Assembly (NCBI RefSeq): GCF_031769215.1 | Contig: NW_026782645.1 | Location: 310,001 to 374,000 of the forward strand | DNA length: 64,000 nucleotides | Reading direction: 5' to 3' | Origin: Ylistrum balloti | Lineage: Eukaryota | Part shown: one piece after another, positions 4,271 through 64,000 of the stretch | Layout: each line of letters opens with the position of its first letter | Numbering within the stretch: position 1 is the stretch's first letter | Made by a program: the position numbers and the translations under genes | The notes under the pieces: model-generated | What the model was told of the DNA's origin: nothing | Seen by the model: only the letters and a program-made list of their open reading frames with translations | Database searches by the model: none

Positions 4271-4510
4271 AGTAGAGGACTCTCAAGGATCTGTTAGAGG
4301 AAGGCTACACTGGCTTACCTGTACTAATGAGTCCAGTAGAGGACTCTCAAGGATCTGTTAGAGGAAGGCTACACTGGCTTACCTGTACTAATGAGTCCAG
4401 TAGAGGACTCTCAAGGATCTGTTAGAGGAAGGCTACACTGACTTACCTGTACTAGTGACTCCGGTAGAGGACTCTCAAGGATCTATTAGAGGAAGACAAC
4501 ACCGACTTAC
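4271..4510. repeat. 64-bp tandem repeat x~3.7 duplicating the 3' end of exon 2 and its donor
   Basis: Minus-strand GTAAG donors at 4510, 4446, 4382, 4318. Confidence 0.95.
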
Positions 4511-4632
4511 CTGTACTAGTGACTCCAGTAGAGGACTCTCAAGAAATTGTTGAAGGAAGGCTAAGTCATTTTGTTCGGCACCGACTTTATCTCCAATGTC
4601 ACCAAGGTTGTCCTGCAGAGTTTGTAGCGAGG
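4511..4632 (-). CDS. MPP6: MPP6-like coding exon 2, first L27 domain (ASLQTLQDNLGDIGDKVGAEQNDLAFLQQFLESPLLESLVQ)
   Basis: AG/GTAAGT boundaries; resembles the MPP2/6 N-terminal L27; 122 nt keeps frame. Confidence 0.85.
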
Positions 4633-13128: not shown

Positions 13129-13607
13129 TTAACGGTCACACGTGTCTTTAAGTAGATGTGACGAGTAAAGTGTGGACGACTTGAGTCGGACGAAAGCATC
13201 CCATACAATTCTGGGTAAGTAATGATAACTCTGGAAACCGGTCTCTCCGTACACTTTGATACGTTGTAGGTAGCCAATCAACACAGATATAACATCTTCT
13301 AAGTCGCCTACGTCATCATTAGGGTAGTCTAGCAAGGAAATATTTGGTGACGTCACCATCAATGCCACTTCCGCTTGGTTACCCGGCCACTGTTTTTTAA
13401 AAGTCGCTACTGTTCTAAGCCCCATGTGGGGTTTCTGGACAATGATTAACGTTTTAGGTATCTTATCATTTCGCTTCAACAGTTTGTAACTGTATTTAAA
13501 ATTTTCGCCGGTATTTTGAGAATTTTCTTCAGTAAGTATTTTGTTTTCTGGTACTCCCAGGGAAACCGCCACATCACGAAATATCTCGGCTTCACTTTTA
13601 CGCCATC
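13129..13607 (-). CDS. DUF218 protein exon 3 (GWRKSEAEIFRDVAVSLGVPENKILTEENSQNTGEN...VQKPHMGLRTVATFKKQWP...), stop at 13129; total CDS 786 nt, 261 aa
   Basis: SEAE.F...A...GVP...I..E..S.NTGEN and VQKP.M..R DUF218 motifs; ttcacag acceptor, phase 1 matches exon 2. Confidence 0.92.
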
Positions 13608-13952
13608 CTGTGAACCAAAAAATGGAAATAATAATTATATTTTTTAAAAAAAAGAAGAATAAAACATACATACAGAAATTTGATGTGTTGGAGCGACATT
13701 CATGCTCCCGTCGGTAACCGTGGAGAAGACTAAATTTTTAACTTATATTATTGGCTTGAAATAAGACCAAAAGTCCTGCACCCAGAGAAAGGATCTGGAA
13801 TCGCCGATAAAGAATCTGCCTGAAGATTGTCTTTATTGTTTTCACTGGAGTTAGGCAAGACTCTCGAATACTAGTCCTACCTATTTTGTGAAAACTTTTG
13901 AAGTTTGGAAAAAAATAATTGACCAAAACCAAATCAGAATATTACTATGCAA

Positions 13953-18275: not shown

Positions 18276-19518
18276 TCAGTGTCTTTCTGTAAGATTACTT
18301 TCGATTCCTTCTTGCTCTTCGTCTTCAGATTGTTTACGTGAGTACCTGTCCCAGAGTCGGTGTATGACGTCATCAACAACAGGCTTGCGGTTTAACTGCC
18401 AGAGATACAATAACACGTCTAACTTCAAATACTCGTGCACGAAACTACGGACAATTAAATTGCTTCTTAACTTCTCTGTATTGAAGTATTTGCTTAGTTG
18501 ATAAGAGTTTATTTTCTCGATTGTTTTAAAACTTATACGTTGTAAAGTAATCACATGATAAAAGAATGAAAATATATTCAAAATGGACACACAAAATAGA
18601 GTTACCCAGATCAGCAGAAATAGTTTCTCGTTGATCATATTAGACGGTAGAGCACATTGAATTGTATATACTTGTTGGTTAGCCTGCTGACGAATGTTCA
18701 GATCGCAGAAAGCTGATCTAGGGAATCGCCTGTGGTCTTCCCACATTAAATCTGGCATGTTTGAAAAGTAATCAGAACCAAATTTTATAAAATCAATTCC
18801 AAGCAGGAATTCCACAAGATAAAATTGAGAAATAGAATTCACTACCATGAACACGTCTGTAATCACCAACCAGATTGTGTAGCGATACCCGGTCAGGAAA
18901 GGAAAGACTATCTCCGGAAAACACATGTCAGAATTCCGTAAGTCTATTAAACGAATAAAATAGTTTTCGATATTTTTGATAACTTCCTCTTTCATCTTTG
19001 GTTCAGTTTCATCATCTTTCTTTCCAAATACATATGTATCCATGATATCAAGGCAGCAGTTGTGATGAAATCCCTCTCTGTTGGCTCCTAGTCTCCATAG
19101 AAACCGGGGTATACAAAATAAAACAGCCTGAAGAATTAGAATATATGTTACCCAGGGATAATATTTCAGAAATTTTTCGTCGTCCTCATTTTCATCTCTA
19201 CTATCAAAACTGGGTTGGCTTTGTAAGGATTCATCAAACGCCACAGAATAAAACCCTTGTACAAAGCATGCGTAGTTTGTGTAATGGACACGTGACTTTG
19301 AAAACTCTGCCGGACAGTAACAGAAGACGGACACTCCTTCATTGTCCTTAGCGAGGAAGACGTCGAGACCATACGAGAGGAAAGACGATATGAAAAGAAC
19401 AGCAGCAACATATATGTTTAATCTTTGACAGAAACTGTCTCCTGAATCACTCAACTTCCGCAAACGACGGGTCAAGTTGAAGAATTTCTCGATCGGTAGA
19501 CTGTAAGAAAACAAATTC
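18276..19518 (-). CDS. inx: Innexin 1 (divergent), main exon; predicted 421 aa with exon at 22819-22841
   Basis: DSFCQRLN, FCYCP..F......NYAC, YYPWV, FPRSAFCDLNIR, QCALPSNMINEKLF, LDVLLYL; four TM segments; tacag acceptor at 19519, phase 2. Confidence 0.93.
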
Positions 19519-19677: not shown

Positions 19678-22278
19678 GTGACCTTTACAATATGTGTAGT
19701 GACCTTGACAATATGTGTAGTGACCTTTTTAATAATTGAAGTGACCTTTACAATATGTGTAGTGACCTTTACAATAGTTGTAGTGACCTTTACAATAGTT
19801 GTAGTGACCTTTATAATAATTGTAGTGACCTTTACAATATGTGTAGTGACCGTTACAATATGTTTAGTGACCTTTACAATATGTGTAGTGACCTTTACAA
19901 TAGTTATAGTGACCTTTACAATATGTGTAGTGACCTTTACAATAGTTGTTATGACATTTACAATATGTGTAGTGACCTTTGCATTAGGTGAAGTGACCTT
20001 TACAATATGTGTAGTGACTTTTACAATAGTTGTTGTGACCTTTACAATAGTTCTAGTGGCCTTTACAATAAGTGTGACCTATACAATAGTTATAGTGACC
20101 TTTACAATAGTTGTAGTGAACTTTACAATAGTTGAAATGACCTTTACAATATGTGTAGTGACCTTTACAATAGTTGTAGTGACCTTCACAATAGTTGTAG
20201 TGACCTTTATAATAATTGTAGTGACCGTTACAATATGTGTAGTGACCTTTACAATATGTGTAGTGACCTTTACAATAGTTATAGTGACCTTTACAATATG
20301 TGTAGTGACCTTTACAATAGTTGTTATGACATTTACAATATGTGTAGTGACCTTTGCATTAGGTGAAGTGACCTTTACAATATGTGTAGTGACCTTTACA
20401 ATATGTGTAGTGACCTTTACAATATGTGTAGTGACTTTTACAATAGTTGTTGTGACCTTTACAATAGTTGTAGTGACCATTAAAATATGTGTAGTGACCT
20501 ATACAATAGTTATAGCGACCTTTACAATAGTTGTAGTGATCTTTACAATATGTGTAGTGACCTTTACAATATGTGTATTGACCTTTACAATAGTTGTAGT
20601 GGCCTTTACAATATGTGTAGTGACCTTCACAATAGTTGTAGTGACCTTTAAAATAGTTGTAGTGACCTTTAGAATATGTGTAGTGACCTTTACAATATGT
20701 GTAGTGACCTTTACAATAGTTGTTGTGACCTTTACAATAGTTGTAGTGACCATTACAATAATTGTAGTGACCTATACAATAGTTATAGTGACCTTTACAA
20801 TAGTTGTAGTTGTAGTGACCTTTTAAATAATTGTACTGACCTATACAATAATTATAGTGACCTTTACAATATGTGAAGTGACCTTTACAATAGTTGTAGC
20901 GACCTTTACAATAGTTGTAGTTGTAGTGACCTTTTAAATAATTGTACTGACCTATACAATAATTATAGTGACCTTTACAATATGTGAAGTGACCTTTACA
21001 ATAGTTGTAGCGACCTTTACAATAGTTTTAGTGACCTTTACAGTAGTTGTTGTGACCTTTGCAATATGTGTAGTAACCTTTACAATAGTTGTTGTGACCT
21101 TTACAATATGTGTAGTGACCTTTTTAATAATTGTAATGACCTTTACAATAATTGTTGTGACCTTTACAATATGTGTAGTGACCTTTACAATAGTTGTAGT
21201 GGCCTTTACAATATGTGTAGTGACCTTCACAATAGTTGTAGTGACCTTTAAAATAGTTGTAGTGACCTTTAGAATATGTGTAGTGACCTTTACAATATGT
21301 GTAGTGACCTTTACAATAGTTGTTGTGACCTTTACAATAGTTGTAGTGACCATTACAATAATTGTAGTGACCTATACAATAGTTATAGTGACCTTTACAA
21401 TAGTTGTAGTTGTAGTGACCTTTTTAATAATTGTAGTGACCTATACAATAGTTATAGTGACCTTTACAATATGTGAAGTGACCTTTACAATAGTTGTAGC
21501 GACCTTTAAAATAGTTGTAGTGACCTTTGGAATATGTGTAGTGACCTTTGCAATATGTGTAGTGACCTTTACAGTAGTTGTTGTGACCTTTACAATATGT
21601 GTAGTGACCTTTACAATAGTTATAGTGACCTTTACAATAGTTGTAGTGACCTTTACAATATGTGTAATGACCTTTACAATAATTGTTGTGACCTTTACAA
21701 TATGTGTAGTGACCTTTACAATAGTTGTAGTGACCATTACAATAGTTGTAGTGACCTTTACAATAGTTGTAGTGGCCTTTACAATATGTGTAGTGACCTT
21801 CACAATAGTTGTAGTGACCTTTAAAATAGTTGTAGTGACCTTTAGAATATGTGTAGTGACCTTTACAATATGTGTAGTGACCTTTACAATAGTTGTTGTG
21901 ACCTTTACAATAGTTGTAGTGACCTTTACAATAGTTGTAGTGACCTTTACAATAGTTGTAGTGACCATTACAATAGTTGTAGTGACCTTTACAATAGTTG
22001 TAGTGGCCTTTACAATATGTGTAGTGACCTTCACAATAGTTGTAGTGACCTTTAAAATAGTTGTAGTGACCTTTGCAATATGTGTAGTGACCTTTACAGT
22101 AGTTGTTGTGACCTTTACAATATGTGTAGTGACCTTTACAATAGTTGTAGTGACCTTTACAATAGTTGTAGTGACCTTTACAATATGTGTAGTGACCTTT
22201 ACAATATGTGTAATGACCTTTACAATAGTTGTAGTGACCTTTACAATATGTGAAGTGACCTTTATAATAGTTGTAGTG
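19678..22278. repeat. 21-bp minisatellite (~124 copies) in the innexin 1 intron
   Basis: gtagtgacctttacaat(agtt/atgt) units. Confidence 0.97.
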
Positions 22279-23681: not shown

Positions 23682-26600
23682 CGTTCCACTGTTCACGTTC
23701 TTCCCACTGTCCACGTTGTTCCACTGTCCACGTTGTTCCACTGTTCACACTGTTCCACTGTTCACGTTGATCCCACTGTTCACGTTCTTCCCACTGTTCA
23801 CGTTGTTCCCACTGTTCACGTTGTTCCACTGTCCACGTTGTTCCACTGTTCAGGTTGTTCCATTGTTCACGTTGTTCCCACTGTCCACGTTGTTTCACTG
23901 TTCACGTTCTTCCCACTGTCCACGTTGTTCCAATGTCCACGTTGTTCCCACTGTTCTCTTTGTTCCACTGTCCACGTTGTTCCCACTGTCCACGTTGTTC
24001 CACTGTCCACATCGTTCCATTGTCCACATTGTTCCACTGTCCACGTTGTTCCCACTGTTCACGTTCTTCCCACTGTCCACGTTGTTCCACTGTTCACGTT
24101 GTTACCACTGTCCACGTTGTTCCACTGTTCACGTTCTTCCCACTGTCCACGTTGTTCCACTGTTCACGTTGTTTCCACTGTTCACGTTCTTCCCACTGTT
24201 CACGTTCTTCCCACTGTTCACGTTGTTCCCACTGTTCACGTTGTTCCACTGTCCACGTTGTTCCACTCTCCACGTTGTTCCACTGTTCAGGTTGTTCCAT
24301 TGTTCACGTTGTTCCCACTGTCCACGTTGTTTCACTGTTCACGTTCTTCCCACTGTCCACGTTGTTCCAATGTCCACGTTGTTCCCACTGTTCTCTTTGT
24401 TCCACTGTCCACGTTGTTCCCACTGTCCACGTTGTTCCACTGTCCACATCGTTCCATTGTCCACATTGTTCCACTGTCCACGTTGTTCCCACTGTTCACG
24501 TTCTTCCCACTGTCCATGTTGTTCCACTGTTCACGTTGTTACCACTGTCCACGTTGTTCCACTGTTCACGTTGTTCCACTGTTTCACTGTTCACGTTGTT
24601 CCCACTGTCAACGTTGTTCCCACTGTTCACGTTGTTCCACTCTCCACGTTGTTCCACTGTCAACGTTGTTCCCACTGTCCACGCTGTTCCAATGTCCACG
24701 TTGTTCCACTGTCCACATCGTTCCATTGTCCACATTGTTCCACTGTCCACGTTGTTCCCACTGTCCACGTTGTTCCCACTGTCCACGTTGTTCCACTGTC
24801 CACGTTATTCCCACTGTCCACGTTGTTCCTACTGTTCACGTTGTTCCATTGTTCACGTTGTTCCCACTGTCCACGTTGTTCCCACTGTTCACGTAGTTCC
24901 ACTGTCCACGTTGCTCCACTGTTCACGTTGTTCCCAATGTCCACGTAGTTCCACTGTCCACGTTGCTCCACTGTTCACGTTGTTCCCACTGTCCACGTTG
25001 TTCCAATGTCCACGTCGTCCACGTTGTTCCACGCTGTTCACGTTGTTTCCACTGTTCACGTTGTTCCATTGTTCACGTTGTTCCCACTGTTCAGGTTGTT
25101 CCCACTGTTCACGTTGTTTCCACTGTCCACGTTGTTCCACTATCCACTTTGTTCCACTGTCCACGTTGTTCCACTGTCCACGTTATTCCCACTGTCCACG
25201 TTGTTCCCACTGTTCACGTTTTTCCACTGTCCACATTGTTCCATTGTCCACGTTGTTCCACTGTTCATATTGTTCGACTGTCCACGTTGTTCCCACTGTC
25301 CTCGTTATTTCCAAGTTCCACGTTGTTCCACTGTCCACGTTGTTCCCACTGTCCACGTTGTTCCCACTGTTCACGTTGTTCCCAGTGTTCACGTTGTTCC
25401 CACTGTCAACGTTGTTCCCACTGTTCACGTTGTTCCACTGTCCACGTTGTTCCACTGTCAACGTTGTTCCCACTGTCCACGCTGTTCCAATGTCCACGTT
25501 GTTCCACTGTCCACATCGTTCCATTGTCCACATTGTTCCACTGTCCACGTTGTTCCCACTGTTCACGTAGTTCCACTGTCCACGTTGCTCCACTGTTCAC
25601 GTTGTTCCCACTGTCCACGTTGTTCCAATGTCCACGTAGTTCCACTGTCCACGTTGCTCCACTGTTCACGTTGTTCCCACTGTCCACGTTGTTCCAATGT
25701 CCACGTAGTTCCACTGTCCACGTTGCTCCACTGTTCACGTTGTTCCCACTGTCCACGTTGTTCCAATGTCCACGTAGTTCCACTGTCCACGTTGCTCCAC
25801 TGTTCACGTTGTTCCCACTGTCCACGTTGTTCCAATGTCCACGTAGTTCCACTGTCCACGTTGCTCCACTGTTCACGTTGTTCCCACTGTCCACGTTGTT
25901 CCAATGTCCACGTAGTTCCACTGTCCACGTTGCTCCACTGTTCACGTTGTTCCCAATGTCCACGTAGTTCCACTGTCCACGTTGCTCCACTGTTCACGTT
26001 GTTCCCACTGTCCACGTTGTTCCAATGTCCACGTCGTTCCGCTGTTCACGTTGTTTCCACTGTTCACGTTGTTCCATTGTTCACGTTGTTCCCACTGTTC
26101 AGGTTGTTCCCACTGTTCACGTTGTTTCCACTGTCCACGTTGTTCCACTATCCACTTTGTTCCACTGTCCACGTTGTTCCACTGTCCACGTTATTCCCAC
26201 TGTCCACGTTGTTCCCACTGTTCACGTTTTTCCACTGTCCACATTGTTCCATTGTCCACGTTGTTCCACTGTTCATATTGTTCGACTGTCCACGTTGTTC
26301 CCACTGTCCTCGTTATTTCCAAGTTCCACGTTGTTCCACTGTCCACGTTGTTCCCACTGTCCACGTTGTTCCCACTGTTCACGTTGTTCCCAGTGTTCAC
26401 GTTGTTCCCACTGTCAACGTTGTTCCCACTGTTCACGTTGTTCCACTGTCCACGTTGTTCCACTGTCAACGTTGTTCCCACTGTCCACGCTGTTCCAATG
26501 TCCACGTTGTTCCACTGTCCACATCGTTCCATTGTCCACATTGTTCCACTGTCCACGTTGTTCCACTGTCCACGTTGTTCCCACTGTCCACGTTGCTCCA

Positions 26601-26695
26601 CTGTCCACGTGGTTTAACTGTTCACGTTGTTCCATTGTCCACATCGTCCCGCTGTCCACGTTGTTCCCACTGTCCACATCGTTCCATAGTTCGTA
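23682..26695. repeat. Complex short-period satellite (ccactgt/tcacgttgttc subunits) with internal block duplications, between the divergent innexins 1 and 2
   Basis: Near-identical ORF-track peptides recur at offsets of 437 nt and 1008 nt. Confidence 0.96.
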
Positions 26696-28441: not shown

Positions 28442-29603
28442 ATTCGAGGATGCATGCACAGCGATTGAACGTGATAGGGACAACAGGGCCAATAACAGAA
28501 TTGGGGAATTTTTCATCCAGCATCTTAATAGTAGCTATTGTTCTGTCCTGTTTGTTCTTGCGACAACAGCGGTGGTGGCTAAGGAAGTATTTGGCGAGCA
28601 GATCAAATGTTGGTGCCCGGATCAATTTACTGATAAACAGGTTGAATTTACAAACAACTACTGTTACGTCAGAAATACCTATTATGTATCATCTCGACAA
28701 ACCATTTCACCTTATCCCGAAGACAGAAAAGTCTACGAGATATATTACTATCCTTGGGTGCCCGTCGTTCTTTTTACTCAATGTGTACTTTTTGTTATTC
28801 CAAAATGGACGTGGATGCAGCTACAGACATTTTCAAGTTTTAGTTTCGTATCTAGAACTACAAAGAATCGAAACATCATGAATGCGGACGATCACACAAA
28901 TATCGCTCATTCTGTGAACAAATGGATTTTAATTCGTATGCAGAAAAAGAAACAGGGAATTCGTTTACGAAAACAAGCGTACAGCTTCGAGATTTCACGG
29001 GAGAGTTACCTTGCAAAAACCTATGTATTCTGCTGTTTCTTGTATGTTCTTAATTCTATCGGACAATTATTCTTACTGGACAAATTTTTAGGTAATCATT
29101 TTTTGTCTCTAGGAACTGATATCGTGTTTAAGAGAAAATACGAAGAGCACCGACCAGGGATGTTGCGTTTTCCAACTGTGACGTTTTGTGACACTTTCGT
29201 CCGACGTATGATCAATATTCAAACATACACCGTGCAATGCTCGCTCCCAAATAATTTGTTCAACGAAATTATTTTTATTTTGACGTGGTTTTTGCTCGTC
29301 CTTCTATCAATAGTGAACATAGTCAGTTTGGTCGACCATTTTGCTATTTTCCTTCGACGACGTAGAAAGATGTTTATCAGAAAATGTCTACTACTCAGCG
29401 AAAACCAGGGTAGTACCCACAAATATGTCGGAAATGATAGCGAACTATTTGACGACTTTTTGGACAACTATCTCGGTGTGGATGGAGTGTTTGTGATATC
29501 GTTAGTCAGTTATCAGCTTGGAGCAGTTTACTCCAGCATTCTCGTGGAAAATATCTGGGATAGTTTTAATGAGCATAAAAACAATGACGAGAAAACGAGC
29601 TAA
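28442..29603 (+). CDS. inx: Innexin 2 (divergent), main exon; predicted 389 aa
   Basis: Frame open from the ttttag acceptor (28441): FEDAC...EFFIQHLN, FGEQIKCWCP, NNYCY, YYPWVP, FPTVTFCD, QCSLPNNLFNEI, LGVDGVFVI. Confidence 0.93.
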
Positions 29604-29940
29604 TGATTACCAACGGTACCAAACGTTGAACTTTTGAGAGTGAAGATTAAAAATTCGAACATTCTTTTACATGTTTACGTAAATGGAATTTATGTATTGA
29701 AGTGATAGCGTCTCCGCCATGTTCATGGTTCGAACCAAGTGTTTCTCAGAAAGCGGAGATGTATATTGTCATACTGTGGTGTCATGGTTTACATTCGTTC
29801 TTTAAAAAATGATAGAGATATGAAAATTAGGAAATTTATTGAATTATAGGGCTAGAGTACATCCCAATCTAGATCCTGACATTTCTTTCGATCACAATTA
29901 AATGTTCTCATTTGCCTCCCAGGCCTCAAAAATTAGGCAC

Positions 29941-30795
29941 TTAGTATCACTGATGAGTCTTAGAAGGACGAGACAGCTGTATGATGTAGCATCACTGACG
30001 AGTACTAGAAGGACTAGACAGCTGTATGATGTAGCATCACTGACGAGTCCTAGAAGGACTAGACAGCTGTATGATGTAACATCACTGATGAGTTCTAGAA
30101 GGACGGAACAGCCGTATGATGTAGCATCATTGATGAGTCTTTGAAAGACGAGACAGCTGTATGATGTAGTATTACTGACGAGTCCTAGAAGGATGAAACA
30201 GCTGTATGATGTAACATCACTGATGAGTTCTAGAAGGACGGAACAGCTGTATGATGTAGCATCATTGATGAGTCTTTGAAAGACGAGACAGCTGTATGAT
30301 GTAGTATTACTGACGAGTCCTAGAAGGATGAAACAGCTGTATGATGTAGTATTACTGACGGGTCCTAGAAGGACAGAACAGCTGTATGATGTAGTATTAC
30401 TGACGAATCCTAGAAGGACGGAACAGCTGTATGATGTAGTATTACTGACGAGTCCTAGAAGGACTAGACAGCTGTATGATGTAGTTTTACTGACGAGGCC
30501 TAGAAGGATGAAACAGCTGTATGATGTAGTATTACTGACGGGTCCTAGAAGGACGGAACAGCTGTATGATGTAGTATTACTGACGAGTCCTAGAAGGACT
30601 AGACAGCTGTATGATGTAGTATTACTGACGAGGCCTAGAAGGATGAAACAGCTGTATGATGTAGTATTACTGACGGGTCCTAGAAGGACGGAACAGCTGT
30701 ATGATGTAGTATTACTGACGAGTCCTAGAAGGACGGAACAGCTGTATGATGTAGTATTACTGACGAGTCCTAGAAGGACGGAACAGCTGTACGAC
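29941..30795 (+). ncRNA. Tandem array of 19 x 45-nt minimal hammerhead ribozyme motifs (array 1), mostly core-mutated
   Basis: Unit consensus YATYA CTGAYGA GTCC TAGAA GGAC GRRAC AGCT GTA TGATG TAG; cores every 45 nt from 29950 to 30760. Confidence 0.88.
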
Positions 30796-31799
30796 GCTGT
30801 TTACTTTATTGTTTGGTTTTTTTTTTTTATCAAATTGTAAATTAATATTAAAAGGCACGATTCACTTGTGTGGTTTTTTCAATCTTATGTCATTGGACAA
30901 GACTGGTTGGATGGTATTTCGTTTCAATTTTCCGCTTGTAGGTAATGATAGCTTTCTTCTAAAACAACATTTTTTCATAAAACAGAAAAGCAGTTTGCAA
31001 GTGTTCATTCGTATTATTCTTTTTCACACTTAAACTTTCAGATAAAGGGATGAACGTCGAAATCAGGACTAAAGGGAAGTAACTCTTACATGTAAAATTA
31101 CCACATATTTGTCTGTTGCGGAATGCGAAGAAAAAGAACTCAAATTTCAATTAAAACATAGAGACAGTATCATTTTGTAATTAATATTTCCTTAATTAGC
31201 TTGGCATTTGGATTGTGATTGACTAGACTGAATAAAAAAAATAACAAAACAAAGAACTGAAGTACATAATTGTTCCAATACATTTTATATTACAACAAAC
31301 GATACAATCATGTCTATTAGATATTCAAAATATAACATTCAGCACCTACAAGTCAACACGGGGGTTGACAAAAATGACTTCAGTAACTTGAAGTGAAGTA
31401 CTTATCATATCAATTTTATCTATATATTGAAAACAATTAACTTAAGCAATTTTCTATCGTGAAGGATTTTCGGATTTTTGTGTTTTTGTTTTATTGCATA
31501 CATGATAATTACAGTATTAATTGAATGCTCTGATCAGTGCTTTTTAATGTGTATGTCGCTTATTTTCATTCTTCTTTCTCGAGGTACATGCATGTAGTAC
31601 CAAATAAATAGGCATATAGAGGCAAAAACATGCCTGTGTCCATCAACTTTTATATTTAGTAAAATTACTGGACAGAATTCGACGCTCAAGAAAAAATCTA
31701 TCTATATATATGTATATAGTCTTGTAAGCCTAGAACATAAATTGTCTATTTTTGATATAGGTAAACATCAATCACATAATATATGAATAAGCAACCCTT

Positions 31800-33261: not shown

Positions 33262-34456
33262 TCATGTTTCTGAATCCAGGGACAAAAATGTCTTCACATG
33301 TGGTTTGTCGCAGTAGTCCTTCCAGAGTTTGGCTACAATCTCTGACGCCACAACTGGGCTTGTGTTGTGACTGATCAACCAGATGAGAAAGACGCCATCT
33401 TGTCTCAAGTACTTGTCAACAAATTTCACCTGAACATCACTAAGTCTACTGCTGTGACGCAGTTCCGGTGCAAGCTGTTCGTCATCAATGTATTTCCGGA
33501 TGTATTCGTTTTTCCGCCGCGGGAAGAAAAGCATAGCAAAGTTGTATACAAAATTTACGATGTTTACAATTGACATTATCACCAGCAGGAACCACAGGAT
33601 GATAAACATCTTCTCATTAAACAGATTGATCGGTAAGGAACACTGAACGGTCCATCGTTGGACATTTTGGAGTTGTCGAATGTTGAAATCACAAAATGTA
33701 ACACGAGGAAATCTCCTCAAGTCTTCCCATTTCTGATTAGTTGATACGCCTTTCACAAAGTCTGGACCCAGATTCAAAAAGTCATTGCCCATCAGAGCAT
33801 CTACCAGGAACAATTGCCCAATAGTGTTCGCCGTGTACAGACCGCATGTTATCAAGTAGATCAAAGTCAGATAATTTCCGAAGTGTATTCCACGATGCCC
33901 CATGCTTTCCTTAAGTGCTTGTATACGCTGGTATGCGGAACTTCTCCCGTCTCTGATTTCAATCCATTTATCTATATAGGACGCAATATCAATCATTCTC
34001 TCAGCGCGTTTCTCTGGGCCTAGATACGTTGCATCACTAGCAAGATTCAGAGTCTTCTTAATGTTTATGCCAGACTTGGGGTAAAATCCTTTCCAGAAGA
34101 TTTTTGGGCAGTAGAAGAGGAACGCCATGAGAACGAAGATAAGAGGGACCCACTGGTAATACATTATTTCTGTATCTTGTCTTTCGTCGTCCTCCACCGG
34201 TAGTATTTCATCAAAAGGGACACCATATGTGTTCTTTATCCAGCAGTAACTGTTGGCATACGACACGTGAAATTTGGCGAACTCGGCAGGACACCAGCAT
34301 TGGATGGGTTCACCGACATATTGCTTTGCGCACACCAACAGCGCAAGTATGATCAGAGAAACGACACAGAACTTCCGGTTCAGGACGTGTATAGATGTAT
34401 CGTCACTCAGTGTAGTTCTGATGACGGAAGTACTCTGCTTTGTTACGTCTTCAAGG
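33262..34456 (-). CDS. inx: Innexin 3, main exon; predicted 400 aa
   Basis: KQYVGEPIQCWCP, NSYCWI, YYQWVP, FPRVTFCDF, QCSLPINLFNEK, YLRQDGVFL; gttcacag acceptor at 34457, phase 2. Confidence 0.96.
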
Positions 34457-35695
34457 CTGTGAACATATAACGATAATTTTACATTAGAACTTCTATCTCT
34501 AGCTATCAAGACATTTGATTAACGTTAAATGAATATTACACATTATTTCACAAACTTACAAAATTTCCTAAACATGATATGTCTATAACATTTTCCCTTT
34601 CTTGCGCAAAACGTCAGAATGATGAACCTAACCGAGGACAAATGTTTTCTTTCCGCCTCTCGGGCTAGCTGATATTTGTAACAACCAGGTAATCGTTCGC
34701 GCGCTTGAATGGAGACGGAAAACGGAAATATCTATTCTTAATTAAAACTTAAAGCTGTGGCCGCCAAGAAGAATTTTTTAGTATAAACAACCATAAAACA
34801 TTGTTTTGTTCGAAAGTAAGACGGGCATATATATAAGGCATGCATTCTACATAAACTAGCGTGCTGACGATAAACTATGGAAATTGTTCACAAGTTCGAA
34901 GTCAATCTTTCCACAGTCGTTTTTATTATCTTTGTGACTCGCATACTTTTCATTACTGTGTAAATGACCCTTGAACGATCACGATGCGGCCATATAAGGT
35001 GTGAATGGCCCGGTGAAGTTTAACAGGGCAATTGTTGGTAGCTAAACCGAGAACACAGGGACATGCAAATTAATAACGATTTCGCTTGTTTGTGGTTTTT
35101 GCGATAGTGTTTTCACCTAAATACTGAAGAAGAGTGGTTCAATTTTACTTCTCAGTCTAATCTCCATAGCAACCAAAATGATGACGTACTTGTGTTGATT
35201 TTGCTACACTATATCTGGTTCCCTCTGTCCCTGTCCGAATTTTCATACACCGAGATGTAGATTTCGCATGAAAAATAAATTCTTAATTATCAAAAGTAAA
35301 AAATGTGTTTAAAACTCTCCAATAAGTTGGAGTATTTTTGAAACAGTTTTTAGCGTTTATTTATTTTAAATATTAAACTAAAATAGTTTAAGTCGTCACA
35401 TCAGGCGTTTATTAGTGTTTGTGTGTAAGGGTTCGGGTTGGAGAAAGTCATCGCTGTATACGAATGTAGTACCAGTTTACATAAAGCTGATATTTATCGC
35501 TCTTCTATCCTTAGCGTTTCTCAGTTTAAAGACTGACAAAAAAAAAAAAAAAAATATCGCACCGGGGTTCTTAAACAGGTGATTAATATTTATGATAGTG
35601 AGTCCTACTGTCACGTGTCCGTTTCAGAATGAAAACATTTCCAGTTCAACAATGAACGTAAGTATGATACAAATTATTTAAAACCACAATATATA

Positions 35696-47571: not shown

Positions 47572-49369
47572 AAACACCATGAACTAGTTAGGAACACAAT
47601 AAATACCATGAACTAGTTAGCAACACAATAAATACCATGAACTAGTTAAGAACACAATAAATACAATGAACTAGTTAGCAACACAATTAATACAATGAAC
47701 TAGTTAGCAACACAGTTAATACCATGAACTAGTTAGAAACACAATAAATACCATGAACTAGTTAGAAACACAATGAATACCATGAACTAGTTAGCAACAC
47801 AGTTAATACCATGAACTAGTTAGAAACACAATAAATACCATGAACTAGTTAGCAACACAATCAATACCATGAACTAGTTAGCAACACAATAAATACCATG
47901 AACTAGTTAAGAACACAATAAATACAATGAACTAGTTAGAAACACAATAAATACCATGAACTAGTTAGAAACACAATAAATACCATGAACTAGTTAGCAA
48001 CACAATCAATACCATGAACTAGTTAGCAACAAAATAAATGAACTAACAACACAATAAATACCATGAACTAGTTAAGAACACAATAAATACCATGAACTAG
48101 TTATGAACACAATAAATACCATGAACTAGTTAGAAACACAATAAATACCATGAACTAGTTAAGAACACAATAAATACCATGAACTAGTTAGCAACACAAT
48201 AAATACCATGAACTAGTTAAGAACACAATAAATACCATGAACTAGTTAGCAACACAATAAATACAATGAACTAGTTAGAAACACAATAAATACCATGAAC
48301 TAGTTAGCAACACAATAAATACCATGAACTAGTTATGAACACAATAAATACAATGAACTAGTTAGGAACACAATAAATACCATGAACTAGTTAGCAACAC
48401 AATAAATACAATGAATTAGTTAGGAACACAATCAATACCATGAACTAGTTAGGAACACAATAAATACCATGAACTAGTTATGAACACAATACATACCATG
48501 AACTAGTTAGCAACACAATCAATACCATGAACTAGTTAGGAACACAATAAATACCATGAACTAGTTAGGAACACAATAAATACCATGAACTAGTTAGGAA
48601 CACAATACATACCATGAAATAGTTAGGAATATAATAAATACCATGAACTAGTTAGGAACACAATACATACCATGAACTAGTTAGTAATATAATAAATACC
48701 ATGACCTAGTTAGCAACACAATAAATACCATGACCTAGTTAGCAACACAATAAATACCATGACCTAGTTAGCAACACAATAAATACCATGAACTAGTTAG
48801 CAACACAATAAATACCATGAACTAGTTAGCAACACAATAAATACCATGAACTAGTTAGCAACACAATAAATACCATGAACTAGTTAGGAACACAATACAT
48901 ACCATGAACTAGTTAGGAACACAATAAATACCATGAACTAGTTAGGAACACAATACATACCATGAAATAGTTAGGAACACAATCAATAATAAATACACAA
49001 TGATACCATGAACTAGTTAGGAACACAATTAATACAATGAACTAGTTAGAAACACAATAAATACCATGAACTAGTTAGAAACACAATAAATACCATGAAC
49101 TAGTTAGGAACACAATAAATACCATGAACTAGTTAGCAACACAATAAATACCATGAACTAGTTAGCAACACAATAAATACCATGAACTAGTTAGCAACAC
49201 AATAAATACAATGAATTAGTTAGCAACACAACAAATACAATGAATTAGTTAGCAACACAATACATACCATGAACTAGTTAGGAACACAATACATACCATG
49301 AAATAGTTAGGAATATGATAGATACTATGTTCCTTACTAGTTCATTGTATCCATTGTGTTCCTAGCTAT
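47572..49369. repeat. ~30-bp minisatellite ending in an inverted copy of the unit
   Basis: aaataccatgaactagttagcaacacaat repeated; reverse-complement copies at 49323-49369. Confidence 0.95.
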
Positions 49370-50444: not shown

Positions 50445-51642
50445 CTACGGTTCTATGTCCGATATGGTCAAGAACGTTTGAACGTAGGGTTTTTTACAGT
50501 AATTTATCCACAGTTTCTCAACAAGTTCGGACCCCACGACTTGACTAGTGTTATGACTTACTAGCCATAAAAGTAGAACACCGTCATGTCTCAAATACAT
50601 ATCAACAAACTTCGTTTCGACATCGAGTAGTTTCGTACTATTTCGGACTTCTGCAGGGAATCTTGTACAATCCAGGAACTTCCGAACGTACATGTTCTTT
50701 CTCCTCGGAATAAAAGTCATAGTAATGCTAATCACAAGATAAATTCCGTTCACTACCGACATTGTGATGAGCAAAAACCACATTAAAACGAAAACTTTCT
50801 CGTTGAATAAGTTAATAGGAAGCGAACATTGAATTGTCCATCTTTGAACGTTTTGTAGTTGCCGAATATCCATATCACAAAACGCAACTCGCGGGAATCT
50901 TTTTAAGTCCTCCCAATTTTTATTGGTAGCCATTCCGCGGACAAAATCTGGCCCAAGATTCCGAAAGTTATTCCCCAGTAGAGCGTCAATAAGAAATATC
51001 TGTGAAACAGTATTCATTAAGTAAAACAGACAAGTCATTACAAAGACAAATGACAGGTAGTTTCCAGAATGAATTCCACCAAGATGGAGCTTTTCTTTCA
51101 TTCGCCGAATTTGGTGATGGGCAGATGACTTTCCTTCCCGAATATCTATCCATTTGTCAATGTATGACGCGATAACGTCCAGGTGCTCCGTGCGCTTTGT
51201 CGGGGACATGAATGTTGCTTCATTTGACATTTCGAGAATTTTCTTTGTGTTGATACCTGAATATGAACTCAGTCCCTTCCAAAATAATCTCGGAAGGTAA
51301 AACATTCCCGCCAAAAGTACAAGAATCAGAGGAACCCATTGATAATACGAGATCTCGCTATCCTCCCGAGAAATATCCGAGACCGGGAGTATTTCATCAA
51401 AAGGTACGGCATAATTATTTCTTATCCAACAATAACTGTTTGTGTAAGCGACATGGAATTTCTCGAAAGTTGCAGGACAGAAACACGTGATCGGTTCGCC
51501 AACGTATTGCCTTGCACTTACAAGGGCAGAAAGGATAATCAAAAATGCCACACACAACTTCCGGTTTGCCTGTTGAATATAGGTGTCATCACTGACGTCA
51601 AAGGTCACGACGGAAATCGCATTTCCGGTGAGGTCGTCGAAG
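50445..51642 (-). CDS. inx: Innexin 4, main exon; predicted 401 aa; close tandem paralogue of innexin 3
   Basis: RQYVGEPITCFCP, NSYCWI, YYQWVP, FPRVAFCD, QCSLPINLFNEK, YLRHDGV; ttcggcag acceptor at 51643, phase 2, in-frame stop just upstream. Confidence 0.96.
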
Positions 51643-53024
51643 CTGCCGAAATAACATCATACATGTGTAAAGTCATGAATTAGATAAAGACACAAATAAA
51701 AAGAATACTATTTCCTATACTTACATATATCATTATGTTATAAGTCTTAAAATGACTTCATTCTTGGTATAGATTTGTTTTCAATTAAAATAAATCATGG
51801 TGATGAAAACGTCATGTTAAATCATTGAAACAACTTCTGACCTCCAAGAAATTGAAAAAAAAGACTTTAAATGACTTTAAATGACTTTAAATGATATCAT
51901 ATATCTCTCTTTAATATTCCTTTTATCCGATATTAATCAAGCGTTACTGGTTTTGTTTCCGTGCATGTAGAACCATACTTGTGTATTGCACTAAGCTTTT
52001 AATTCCACAGGTACTTAGTCCCCGCTGAAAGCTCCTTGAAACTCTTACTCATTCCGAGCCCTTAAAGCTTGTATTATTGTACAGGTACAATAATGAAGTC
52101 GTGTTATGAATGTGCCAATGGATGTTGAAGAGATTTAAAAACTTCCTTAAAATAATATAAAAAATTTAAAATTTAAAAAGCATTTAAATATCTTAAATTT
52201 TTTTACTATATTTTTTCAGTGTCTCTTAAGTCAAATTATAACAGGTCGTATTTTGTATGTATATATTATTAAGTTAACGTCATTTCAAAATTTTATGCGA
52301 CATTTTAATAAAATATTTTATTTCAATTTTTTTATTTATAGCAGACATGAAATGACCTACTCTGACCTAAATTAATGACAATTGACATTTTATGTTGTTA
52401 ATGATAAATAGAAAACGCGGACATCTCACGGTCTTCTTCACGGTATAGGGGTTCACATCGTCATAGAAGCGTTGGTCACAGGAGAACAGGTGTGGTATGA
52501 CAATCCCAACTGATATTTGAAGGAATCGTTTTTCAGTTAAAGATAAAAAGGATCAAAGCAGCACGTTAACACTTAATCAGAACATCCCTGATTACTCTTC
52601 ACGACACTGTTCTGATTTTCTGTAAATTTTTAATATTCGTTGAGGGTTTATTTTCGATGGTTTCGGGGCTAATCTGAAATCACGAATTCAAATGTCATCA
52701 ATTTGTTAAAACAAGTTCAATTGGATTCACTGGGCTAAATTTGTTCGCGAATTAGCAGTATTTACAAAAACAAAAACAACTAGAAATTGTTTTTTTGATT
52801 TAATAATTATTTTATTGCAAAACTATGTACAATTGGATTGGGCACAAGTTTTTCCAACTTATTAAGCCCTCTCCATTACATGAATGGTAAAACAATACTT
52901 AACTACAAGCAATGTAACAATATATTGAATCATAATATTTTTCATTGAAAAAAAAAAGAAGGATGTAAAGAAGAAAGGAGGATAGGTGAGGAAGGAAGAA
53001 GGGAATATATAGTACAAAGGAAGA

Positions 53025-58108: not shown

Positions 58109-60679
58109 TTCTAGGTGACTTCAGGAGTCGGCCGTCCTCAGGTAGACATAACTATCCAAGCCACGGTGTGTACATGGAGATCCTAGTTGGTATATACCCG
58201 TAGGAACACTTGTAGATGTGTATTTAAAGCTCTTACGACGAAAGCCAATTTTCGGGTATGTTTAAAGTGTCAGGACCCGTTAGTATTTCGAAATAAAAAT
58301 CTTGGCCTTTATTTACATGAGTAAACACTATATAAGCCGATTATTTTGTGTTAGTATTATATACGCATATTATTAAGCACGTTTTCTCAAGTTTGGCCAT
58401 TTGACCAAAGGTCATATGGTCTGAAGAAAACCATGTTATATTTTCTGTATGAAAAAGTAATGACCACAAGTTTTGAAATGAATGAATAATATTGCCATCT
58501 TTCCCTTAAATGCCTCCCCGAGAAGGGGACAGAAAAGAGCGAAAAAACTCTCCAGATACTACACCCTAATATAAGTTTCATCCCGGGATATACACGCAGA
58601 GTTGGTATGTAGGAAATTGGAGTCAAATCGAGTCTATTTAACGTCAACGCAGGCGAGTCTGCCTCTGTATCAACATTTCAATATCGTAAAAGTTTCATCT
58701 GATACCCAAAGTTTCTTGTATACATACAAAGAAGCATGTAACCCAGTCGTTACATCACCGGCATAATAAGCATAAAATGATTATATAAACTATGGTATGT
58801 CTCGGCTAGGGGAGAGAACCCAAAACTTTCCTTACAAGGGGCAAATATTCAACTAAATAACGTGATAAACAGCTGTACGATACACTTAGGAAACCGTCTA
58901 CTGTATCTAACTTTTAATTTTTATCAAAAGGTGATATTACACGTGTCCTTTGTACAACATTTTCTTTGAATTACGATTCAATTCCAGAATGTAGTTCATT
59001 TGGTTTGTTTTTTTCGATTTCCATTTTTTTTATACTTCGGCGTCTCTTAACCAGAATCTTATATCTAATCGAAATGCACTTTGTTATAACTCTGGAAAAA
59101 CTGACGTCGCTAGGTGTGAGAGCATTTTCAGAAATTTTAAACATAAAAATTAAATATGCATAATGCATTTGAGTTTCATAAATAAGACTAACGAATACAG
59201 TATACGTTTGGTTTATGAAAGAACAAAAGAATTTATACTATAGGATGGTAGGTGATGAATCATATCGGTTAAAGAAAACTAGACAGAAGGAAATTGCCAA
59301 AATAAATGATTGGTGATTGTATTCGTGTCTATATAAACAGGATTGATAAATTACAAATATGTACATAAAACATTATATTCATAAAGTATCTTTCAAAAAT
59401 ACGTATGTCACGTTGACTTTAAGTCTAGAGTGATGGATACGAGAGTGATTGTGTAGTATGTCTCTTTAACCGATCTCCCCTTTCATGTACAGTAGTCCTT
59501 TAAAAATGTCCTCTTTTGTAGTGTTAATCCTTTCAGTCAGAAGAAAAATGATCACGTGATTTAAATGTCGGCCTGTTGAACAAGCAGTGTCTCTTTGTAT
59601 GAACTTTCAATTATGTTTGCTGTGTCAATTGTTGTCAACAAAGATATGCAACTTGAATATGATTTTAATTCATCAAATTTTTGAATCAGACTTATTGAAT
59701 TTAAATCAAATTTCATGGGAAACTCGGGACTAGACAAACCTGATATCTTGTGAAAAAAGCCCAAGAAAATACCAACATCCAACATAAACATTATCCAAAC
59801 TCAGATTCAATAAAACCAGGGCATAGTATAAAAAAAAAAAAAAAATACACAAAGACTCTTGAAAAAATACAAGGAGAATAAGACCAGCTTGAGATAAGAT
59901 GTTTCGGAAGAGTAAGTGTTCTCTGCTTCATCGGCGACATCAGCCATGTGCACATTGGTCAGTCAAAGTTAGCAATTTCACGTTCGGAACGCTTGATCTC
60001 TGTACGTTTTCAAATGTCTCCTGGTAAATCTTCTTTGTTCGTATTTTCCACCAGTTTCAGTGAAGTTTAATTAATTAATTTAATTAATATTCTGTTGTCG
60101 TCCCGACAGTACTTTTGTTTGAGCTTTGACTATGGATCTTGAAAATGAATCGATGGGTGAAGCCGTTTACTATTAAAACAGAGAAAGCCAAACTGTACAG
60201 GTTGACGGAACACAGTACACCTATCTGATGCCCGAAATAAAAAAAAAACCTTATGGTAAATAATGTACTTATGTAATTAATAAAATTGTAGAGAGCACTT
60301 AATTGTTCAAATTAATAGAATATCACTTTTAAACCAAAATCTTTATTTTCTAAGATCATGATAATTGACAAAGGGTATTATAAGGGATAACAAAATTCTG
60401 AAATTAACTCACAATGTTGCCATATTGGAATATTAAAGGAAAAGCTGATGACGGAAGTCCTTTTGTAATGTAGTTAATGGCGGACAATGGCAAAAAGTAG
60501 AAATATTAATAAAATTGATTTCATTGATACATTAAGAATTAATTTGTATAAATACATACACAGTTCATGTGTTTTTTTTTATCTCATTCCTCTTTACATA
60601 GCATCAGAAATAGCATCAAACACGAAATGGAAATTTGATAAGGAAACAAGTTTTACAACTTATCCATCTTCCAGATGTA

Positions 60680-61754: not shown

Positions 61755-62148
61755 TCAGAGTATGTACTTGACGTTTTTTCTAAAATAATCAGACAAATGA
61801 CTTAATTACGGGGATTGTGCACCTTCACATCTAGATTTTCACATTTGTTTCAATCATTTTGAAACACACGTAAAGAGTTTATATAAATTAGATAGACACT
61901 ACAAATGATTGTGTAAAACCGATTTGTTTTGTTCTTCTGGAGAAAATGATATACTGAGAGTTCGGAAGTAATCATCCTTCCCACTAACTACTGCTGTGGT
62001 TACTAACTTTGTGACTATTCATTGACAAAGTAGAAAATAATACTAAACACAAATGTCGACATAATTTGGTAATATTTCATTCAGGCAATTAGCAATTTAT
62101 CCATCTAAAATTTGAAAGAAAATATTTATACACAAGTGAATATTTCAC

Positions 62149-63090
62149 CATACAGCTGTTTCGTCCTTTTAGGACTCGTCCTAGACGTTACACCATACAG
62201 CTGTTTCGTCCTTTTAGGACTCGTCCTTGATTGTACATCATAGAGCTGTTTCGTCCTTTTAGGACTCGTCAGTGATACTACATCATACAGCTGTTCCGTC
62301 CTTTTAGGACTCGTCAGTGATACTACATCACATAGCTGTTTCGTCCTTTTAGGACTCGTCCTTGATGTTACATCATAGAGCTGTTTCGTCCTTTTAGGAC
62401 TCGTCCTTGATGTTACATCATACAGCTGTTCCGTCCTTTTAGGACTCGTCAGTGATACTACATCATACAGCTGTTTCGTCCTTTTAGGACTCGTCCTTGA
62501 TGTACATCATACAGCTGTTTCGTCCTTTTAGGACTCGTCCTTGATGTTACATCATACAGCTGTTCCGTCCTTTTAGGACTCGTCAGTGATACTACATCAT
62601 ACAGCTGTTTCGTCCTTTTATTACTTGTCAGTGATACTATATCATACAGCTGTTTCGTCCTTTTAGGACTCGTCCTTGATGTACATCCTACAGCTGTTTC
62701 GTCCTTTTAGGACTCGTCCTTGATGTTACATCATACAGCTGTTCCGTCCTCTTAGGACTCGTTAGTGATACTACATCATACAGCTGTTTCGTCCTTTTAT
62801 TACTTGTCAGTGATACTATATCATACAGCTGTTTCGTCCTTTTAGGACTCGTCCTTGGTGTTACATCATACAGCTGTTTCGTCCTTTTAAGAATCGTCCT
62901 TGATGTTACATCATACAGCTGTTTCGTCCTTTTAGGACTCGTCAGTGATACTACATCATACAGCTGTTTCGTCCTTTTAGGACTTGTCCTTGATGTTACA
63001 TCATACAGCTGTTTCGTCCTTTTAGGACTCGTCCTTGATGTTACATCATACAGCTGTTTCGTCCTTTTAGGACTCATTCATGATGCTAAA
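62149..63090 (-). ncRNA. Tandem array of 21 x ~45-nt minimal hammerhead ribozyme motifs (array 2)
   Basis: Minus-strand unit TATCA CTGACGA GTCC TAAAA GGAC GAAAC AGCT GTA TGATG TAG; same family as array 1, opposite orientation. Confidence 0.9.
62909..62950 (-). ncRNA. Fully canonical minimal (type I-like) hammerhead ribozyme unit; predicted cleavage after GUA, between 62914 and 62913
   Basis: UAUCA-CUGACGA-GUCC(UAAAA)GGAC-GAA-AC(AGCU)GU-A^UGAUG: all conserved core nucleotides and three helices present. Confidence 0.88.
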
Positions 63091-64000
63091 GGCCTAAATT
63101 TTGAAAACTAGGGGGCGATAGAGGAAAGTCCAAAGAGATAGAATGTATGTATTAAAATATGAAAAGAGAAGATTTTTCAAAATCAAGTGTCACACTCTTA
63201 CATACGTAATACTTATACAATAAACAGCTAGCGGTCTTATAGAATGAAGATTTTATCTGCTATTATCAGTTAAATCAAGATAATATATTCCTACCGTAAG
63301 AAATGAAAACAAAAGCTGAGCTGTTCTATATCAATGCAGTAAATAGTGATCTTTGAGAGTGTATATGTATTTTGAGTGTATGTAAAAATGCTTCGGCTCT
63401 TTTGATCGGTGTAGATGTTTATATCAATTAGAAGGCACAATCAGGTGTATACTTTGGGATAATATTTATGTCCAATGCAAGTGGGTGTACGTGGGAATTG
63501 CAGAACTGATTCATGCATGTGTCCATGTGCTTTTAGCATGTTTAAATAACATCTTGTATTTCTTTTTGATATATTTTTTATTACGATCAATATATGGTCA
63601 ACAACAATTACATACATACGAATATATAGAGACATGAAATACTCACCTTTGTTGTCATATAAACACTTCAACAAGATGACAACTCTTATATTCGCAGGAT
63701 CTCGTACACGGGTATTTTGTTCGTGGCTTCCGCGTGAACAGGATGCGCTTCCCAATTACATCACCAGTAAAGATAATTCCAAGAACCAGACACTTTATAC
63801 GCCATCCAGTAACATACCTGCCTATTTACAGGCCTGTCAAACGAAGACATTTACCCACAGTCGGTCATCATGTCCCAAATAATCAACGTCATACACAGAA
63901 AGGCATTCCAGATAAAGATAAGGCAGTTGAGTCTAAAAGTTCTCTTGAAACAATGACTGCTTTGTTTGATGGTATTGAAAGGTTATTAAACAAATCTGCG

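Follow-up and report, generated by a model that had tools for sequence, protein, structure and literature searches.

Two arrays of a 45-bp repeat in the scallop Ylistrum balloti raise the question of whether a self-cleaving RNA can make up the whole unit of a tandem repeat, and whether such a repeat still cleaves or now evolves as ordinary satellite DNA. Within the window (the whole stretch of 64,000 nucleotides that was analysed), Tandem Repeats Finder reported one period-45 array at 62149-63075 (A1; 20.6 copies, 89% matches) and another at 29942-30791 (A2; 18.9 copies, 88% matches). The arrays were split at the GUA site in the RNA sense (minus strand for A1, plus strand for A2), which gave 21 units in A1 and 19 in A2, with no spacer between adjoining units (Table 1). 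An earlier reading made from the letters alone (hereafter, the sequence-only reading) had described two 45-bp arrays in opposite orientation without spacer, which is borne out by both Tandem Repeats Finder and the unit splitting. A 21-nt probe had 40 copies in the window, all within A1 and A2 (none expected from shuffles). The 45-mer that had been quoted as the sequence of each unit has no exact copy; there are two copies with a single mismatch, of which one is a variant with A13 changed to G. One reading frame of the array is open, because 45 is divisible by three, but stops occur in some units and about half of all 15-codon units are open by expectation, so the arrays were rejected as coding sequence.

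The resemblance to hammerhead ribozymes was assessed with Rfam, a check that had been proposed in the sequence-only reading. Hammerhead was indeed the sole family matched, and in both arrays, but no match in the 64-kb window reached the gathering thresholds (48.5 for RF00008, the type III model, and 34 for RF00163), and permissive thresholds were needed. The best RF00008 score was 46.9 bits (E = 3.8e-07 window-wide, 4227 families), while the best RF00163 score was 30.7. Every Rfam match with E <= 0.05 in the 64 kb was a hammerhead lying within A1 or A2, which argues that the resemblance is specific and not due to chance. The best alignment was to the type III model across a unit boundary, and not to the type I model. 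It covered 62915-62967, made up of the palindrome upstream and the only fully canonical unit in which stem II and palindrome are perfect, and the MFE structure of this segment was a three-way junction.

The cross-junction fold of 53 nt was the MFE structure at -15.9 kcal/mol (z = -3.2), a value matched by no shuffle out of 200. For a lone type I monomer the hammerhead fold had -2.8 kcal/mol versus -8.6 for its MFE structure, and on this energy difference the type I monomer was ruled out as the active fold. A single 45-nt unit is thus not expected from the folding models to be an active ribozyme. The catalytic fold in an array transcript would be a three-way junction over the unit boundary, the sole one predicted to be thermodynamically favoured. 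In this fold stem III would be an 8-bp duplex between the ACAGCUGU palindromes of adjacent units, stem I would be the hairpin UGAUG-UAG-UAUCA, and stem II would be formed by GUCC and GGAC around a loop (UAAAA in the best-scoring alignment). As modelled, this arrangement would equal a type III hammerhead, or half of a classical double hammerhead. The type I architecture that had been proposed therefore stands in part: the remark on dimers was right, but the favoured fold appears to be a type III junction with stem III formed across two units. Over the 40 units, 96% of cells in the three helices round the core are paired. The value with shuffled partners was 95.7%, 33 of 500 shuffles reached the observed one, and double changes were present in three cells. 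Covariation is not significant because the units are too similar, and it was rejected as support for the fold.

To describe the state of the catalytic core, each unit was scored at C3, U4, G5, A6, G8, A9, G12, A13, A14, A15.1 and U16.1, plus H17. Combined, the 40 units give a fully canonical consensus, with all 11 core nucleotides, H17 and three helices. Individual units had been read as carrying a complete core, and the arrays as made entirely of ribozyme motifs. The first statement holds for the consensus and for the six units (two in A1, four in A2) with all 11 invariant nucleotides and H17 intact, but not for the other 34, and the second fails on the substitutions at invariant core positions in those 34 units. 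In A1, the majority unit has AG instead of C3-U4, and the Tandem Repeats Finder consensus reads AGGACGA, not CUGACGA. The CUGANGA box is missing from 13 A1 units (AGGACGA in most) and from the partial first unit (UGAAUGA); A13G is present in four units, one of which also has G5A, and G8A together with a broken stem II in two. In A2, the GAA box is altered in most units and C3U or A9G is present in some. All four core-intact A2 units carry a C11.1 to U change, leaving a G10.1-U11.1 wobble, and in two of the four stem II has a further defect, a G.A mismatch.

Table 1. Positions of the two arrays, their core-intact units, their flanking motifs and the neighbouring innexin genes, counted from the first letter of the window.
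Feature	Position	Strand	Remarks
Array A1	62149-63093	-	21 head-to-tail units of 45 nt, two of 44; in the majority 'B' unit AGGACGA replaces the CUGANGA box
Canonical unit of A1	62914-62958	-	Intact core; the only fully canonical unit in which stem II and palindrome are perfect
Second core-intact unit of A1	62241-62285	-	One mismatch, in the distal palindrome
Leader of A1	63094-63125	-	Adjoins first unit; common to A2, 27/37 identical including the start of unit 1
Array A2	29937-30795	+	19 units of 45 nt; loop 2 UAGAA; GGA, UAG, GAG or AGA mostly replaces G12-A13-A14
Core-intact unit of A2	30162-30206	+	C11.1 to U wobble; identical unit at 30297-30341
Core-intact unit of A2	30477-30521	+	Weak stem II (G-U wobble and G.A mismatch); 4/5 stem I pairs
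Core-intact unit of A2	30612-30656	+	Stem II as in 30477-30521; full stem I
Leader of A2	29905-29936	+	Adjoins first unit; motif TCAAAAATTAGGC in the window only at both array starts
12-mer ATTCACTTGTGT downstream of A2	30860-30871	+	Same 12-mer downstream of A1, 62130-62141 (-)
Innexin coding exon	28572-29603	+	A2 begins 338 nt past the stop codon, same orientation
Innexin genes, single-exon coding regions	18276-19514 (-), 28572-29603 (+), 33262-34509 (-), 50445-51650 (-)		Cluster of four

In classical mutagenesis of the hammerhead core, substitutions at the scored positions lower cleavage by orders of magnitude. From the scored cores, we infer that activity has been lost and that the ribozyme is mostly dead in the window. 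Self-cleavage into 45-nt monomers, which had been anticipated for an array transcript, is not expected because the cores of 34 of the 40 units are mutated. At best, cuts are predicted next to the two A1 units and the four A2 units, with fragments of ~135-670 nt: an A1 transcript would be cut next to two units ~670 nt apart, and an A2 transcript at up to four sites 135-180 nt apart.

The pattern of conservation was compared among classes of position. In both arrays the core columns had the lowest mean conservation of any class (0.83-0.86), the loops had 0.88-0.95, and the stem III/cleavage-site block had 0.98-0.99. The sequence-only reading had named a lack of extra conservation of the core relative to the loops, among copies genome-wide, as part of what would refute it; within the window, such a lack is observed. 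To lessen the effect of block duplication, distinct minor alleles were also counted per column. This gave 1.22 substitution events per core column versus 1.14 at other non-substrate positions (P-value = 0.85), a comparison that is weak as a test of selection because it draws on two arrays, each composed of units that are not independent of one another. The substrate strand (palindrome, GUA site and UGAUG) had 0.50 events per column, a non-significant trend (P-value = 0.07-0.09), and its fewer changes could hint at residual constraint.

Relationships among units revealed how the arrays are built. Unit identity peaks at a lag of three units in A2 and of three to four in A1, with several identical pairs at such lags, and the arrays have higher-order periods of 135-180 bp and array-specific variants. 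Identity between units is 0.88-0.90 within an array versus 0.83 between arrays. The lag peaks and the excess of identity within arrays are hallmarks of local homogenisation and higher-order repeats. The majority variants of the arrays are the core-mutated ones. A1 and A2 accordingly have the properties of satellite or minisatellite DNA, namely head-to-tail arrangement, array-specific variants, higher-order repeats and amplification of dead variants. Both arrays begin in the same phase after a common leader, and the 12-mer found downstream of each may be a remnant of a joint 3' flank. The local alignment score between the 600-nt flanks of A1 and A2 was within the shuffle range; with a leader of ~35 nt and one 12-mer as the sole shared sequences, a common mobile element round both arrays was rejected.

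The genes of the window were identified with Pfam. Outside the tandem arrays, the scanned ORFs with a match were four innexins and one DUF218, the other scanned ORFs having no significant match, and no RT or endonuclease ORF was found among them; this agrees with the earlier statement that no autonomous element is visible in the window. The DUF218 domain (E = 2.9e-14) is in an ORF of 180 aa at 13129-13671 (-), beside a 35/57-bp satellite. The order and orientation of the innexin cluster are kept in Pecten, Argopecten and Mizuhopecten. A1 shares its strand with another innexin CDS and is situated ~10.5 kb upstream of it, and innexin orthologues in other scallops have long 5'-UTR introns. A placement of A1 in an innexin intron was set aside, since the CDS is a single exon and 5'-UTR exons are not locatable without transcripts. 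A sense position within genes would make active ribozymes costly, which could account for their inactivation. Exclusion of retrozymes from genes has been reported (Li et al., 2026, preprint, 10.64898/2026.07.22.740005). The innexin beside A2 matches a Ylistrum balloti protein at 100% identity, which assigns the window to this scallop.

Syntenic innexin loci from three other scallops, Pecten maximus, Argopecten irradians and Mizuhopecten yessoensis, were then compared. In their combined 154 kb, neither an Rfam hammerhead nor a full 45-nt unit was found. In Pecten maximus, a 23-bp satellite of 51 copies was detected on the minus strand (L004:8223-9400), ~600 bp upstream of the orthologous innexin. 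Its unit corresponds to the 3' half of the 45-bp unit only, comprising the 3' strand of stem II, G/AAA, ACAGCUGU, A17 and UGAU, without the CUGANGA box. In Mizuhopecten yessoensis there is one degenerate solo copy on the minus strand (L006:3285-3343), which has GUCC-UAGAU-GGAC-GAA, a decayed palindrome and a 5' box mutated to CCAACGG. The Pecten half-unit satellite and the Mizuhopecten solo copy indicate that the family is older than Ylistrum, and judging from the compared loci, A1 and A2 at their two sites are lineage-specific. Amplification is as effective for a fragment that cannot act as a ribozyme as it is for the full unit; the higher-order repeats and this non-catalytic half-unit together argue that amplification has no need of ribozyme activity. 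Tandem repeats make up 52% of the orthologous locus in Pecten, 8.5% in Argopecten and 2.8% in Mizuhopecten. Weak covariance-model matches at 17.3-18.7 kb of L004 were attributable to an unrelated 49-bp satellite and were discarded. The sole Rfam match at gathering level in 88 kb of scallop loci was a tRNA gene in the Argopecten locus (L008:3008-3086, -).

In metagenome and viral collections, the exact pattern of the unit junction had no match. A relaxed pattern identified only three lake metagenome contigs (L001-L003) with a retrozyme-like tandem repeat of ~565 nt from a freshwater eukaryote; the type I hammerhead carried by this repeat is canonical and has a stem I of 6 bp (GCAAUG/CAUUGC). 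The module CUGAUGA-GUCC...GGAC-GAA-ACAGCUGU-A is identical in the ~565-nt repeat and the 45-nt unit. The 45-nt unit is thus the catalytic module of a retrozyme-type hammerhead with the body shrunk to a 3-nt loop. The description of the unit as an extremely reduced, ribozyme-only repeat is upheld, the cargo part of a retrozyme being the 3-nt loop here, and a hammerhead-derived repeat of the metazoan type I, dimer-dependent kind is supported.

Taken together, A1 and A2 are probably a hammerhead-derived minisatellite that has for the most part decayed and evolves at the level of DNA. A single complete minimal hammerhead, of the metazoan retrozyme/Penelope type, would be the ancestor of the 45-bp unit, and the canonical consensus of the 40 units is the pattern expected of copies that came from an intact ancestor and later decayed. 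We infer both that this ancestor was active and that amplification took place at the DNA level. Because the units are mostly dead and the dead variants are the amplified ones, the arrays appear to evolve now as ordinary satellite DNA; they would change by unequal exchange or slippage and by local homogenisation, with higher-order repeats of 135-180 bp and no selection for catalysis. The evidence in the window points to decay, not function. One caveat is that dispersal with a common leader needs a mobility mechanism, which is unexplained by satellite dynamics alone; another is that arrays outside the window may have kept far more of their cores intact.

One alternative, along the lines of the sequence-only reading, is a living ribozyme-only retrozyme, in which every unit would self-cleave to yield 45-nt monomers, tRNA ligase would close these into circles, and a borrowed Penelope-like RT would copy the circles by rolling circle and seed new arrays. 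The canonical family consensus, the same start phase of both arrays behind the common leader and the precedent of known retrozymes (PMC7229834) are consistent with it. We nevertheless consider it unlikely for the family as a whole, given that 34 of the 40 units are core-mutated and dead variants are amplified, that the core is conserved no better than the loops, and that Pecten has a 51-copy array of a half-unit unable to be a ribozyme; moreover, the common leader lies outside the 45-nt circle, and the window is without an RT or endonuclease ORF. Quite unlikely, in our estimate, is a smallest possible retrozyme in which the minority of intact cores would cleave, in cis or in trans, the near-invariant substrate strand (ACAGCUGUA^UGAUG) of every unit, the resulting 45-nt or 135-nt RNAs would circularise and be copied by a Penelope-like RT, and array-level selection would keep the substrate sites while the cores decay.

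A further alternative is exaptation or constraint, the invariant block ACAGCTGTATGATG being kept for protein sites of the CAGCTG (E-box) kind or for transcript cleavage or termination 3' of the innexin; in a variant of this explanation, the few intact cores would cleave the conserved sites in cis or in trans. The block is 98-99% conserved in both arrays and kept in the Pecten 23-mer, A2 lies in sense 338 nt 3' of the innexin stop codon, and every unit has substrate and enzyme arms, so that trans cleavage should be sterically possible. The lower event rate of the block is non-significant, however, and the orthologous loci of three scallops are without the arrays, and we regard exaptation as very unlikely. 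An ordinary minisatellite that merely looks like a hammerhead might be suspected in a window of which 26% is tandem repeat of many unrelated families, the more so as no Rfam gathering score was reached. Chance resemblance is hardly credible against a window-wide E of 3.8e-07 among 4227 families with hammerhead alone matched, a consensus with all 11 core nucleotides, H17 and three helices, and an identical catalytic module in an independent retrozyme-like repeat.

The scallop family can be placed among known systems. In metazoans, type I hammerheads whose helix II has 4 bp and whose helix III has 1-2 bp and a palindromic loop are active as dimers in tandem repeats (PMC4209133), and the logic of the double hammerhead is known for newt and Penelope-type motifs (PMC4209133; PMC6765202); for the newt, double-hammerhead cleavage was proposed by Forster (1988, as cited in PMC4209133). 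A study of 2011 noted 'cryptic mutant hammerheads' associated with repeats. Animal non-LTR retrozymes (Cervera and de la Pena, 2020, PMC7229834; Li et al., 2026) likewise form head-to-tail repeats with one type I hammerhead each, have a stem II of 4 bp and a stem III of 2 bp closed by a palindromic loop, are low in GC, depend on dimers for folding and exist as solo and multimer copies. Their reported monomers are ~220-400 nt with a structured non-ribozyme body, whereas the scallop unit is 45 nt with a 3-nt loop as its body, and most scallop units are core-mutated. The minimal hammerheads of PLEs (Cervera and de la Pena, 2014, PMC4209133) are also type I, without evident loop-loop contacts, with a short palindromic helix III and with activity expected only as dimers. 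These PLE motifs are situated in pLTRs that flank an RT/GIY-YIG ORF, and their helix II is typically 6-8 bp long. The scallop units, by contrast, abut one another and have a 4-bp helix II, with no PLE ORF close by in the window.

Hammerheads are also carried by satellite DNAs with units of ~330-500 bp, namely newt satellite 2, Dolichopoda pDo500 and Schistosoma Sm-alpha (cited in PMC7761336 and PMC3088659). These resemble the scallop arrays as satellites whose transcripts contain a type I hammerhead, but in them the ribozyme is a small part of the unit, whereas the scallop unit is wholly ribozyme. The Helentron-carried arrays of Crassostrea gigas (PMC7492417) are similar in being shorter than 1 kb in gene-rich bivalve DNA, with one conserved flank and many unrelated arrays; they differ from the scallop arrays, for which no Helitron/Helentron ends or ORFs were identified in the window and whose unit is of recognisable RNA origin. 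A literature search of incomplete coverage found no published description of a 45-nt ribozyme-only unit, of this unit sequence or of scallop hammerheads, in keeping with the sequence-only reading, which knew of none for spacer-less 45-nt hammerhead arrays. In newt satellite 2, retrozymes and Penelope pLTRs alike, the ribozyme is a minor portion of a unit several hundred nt long. A ribozyme that makes up the whole satellite unit marks the lower size limit of hammerhead-bearing repeats, and the full units, 135-nt blocks, 23-bp half-unit and degenerate solo copy form a clear natural series leading from a mobile ribozyme to satellite DNA of the plain kind. Any intact and expressed arrays elsewhere in the genome would predict self-cleaved or circular RNAs of 45 nt, smaller than any described.

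Besides A1 and A2, the window holds over a dozen unrelated families of minisatellite with periods of 17-149 bp, and other arrays reach 3 kb (for example 19678-22278, 23683-26686 and 47572-49313). A 64-bp satellite at 4271-4563 (+) contains CUAAUGAGUCC-AGUAGA-GGAC, that is, a hammerhead-like 5' box and stem II without the GAA box. Rfam is silent on this satellite, which could be due to chance or be another decayed derivative. At 58866-58881 (+) there is a solo TAAACAGCTGTACGAT followed by ACAC, which is closer to the Pecten 23-bp half-unit than to the 45-bp unit.
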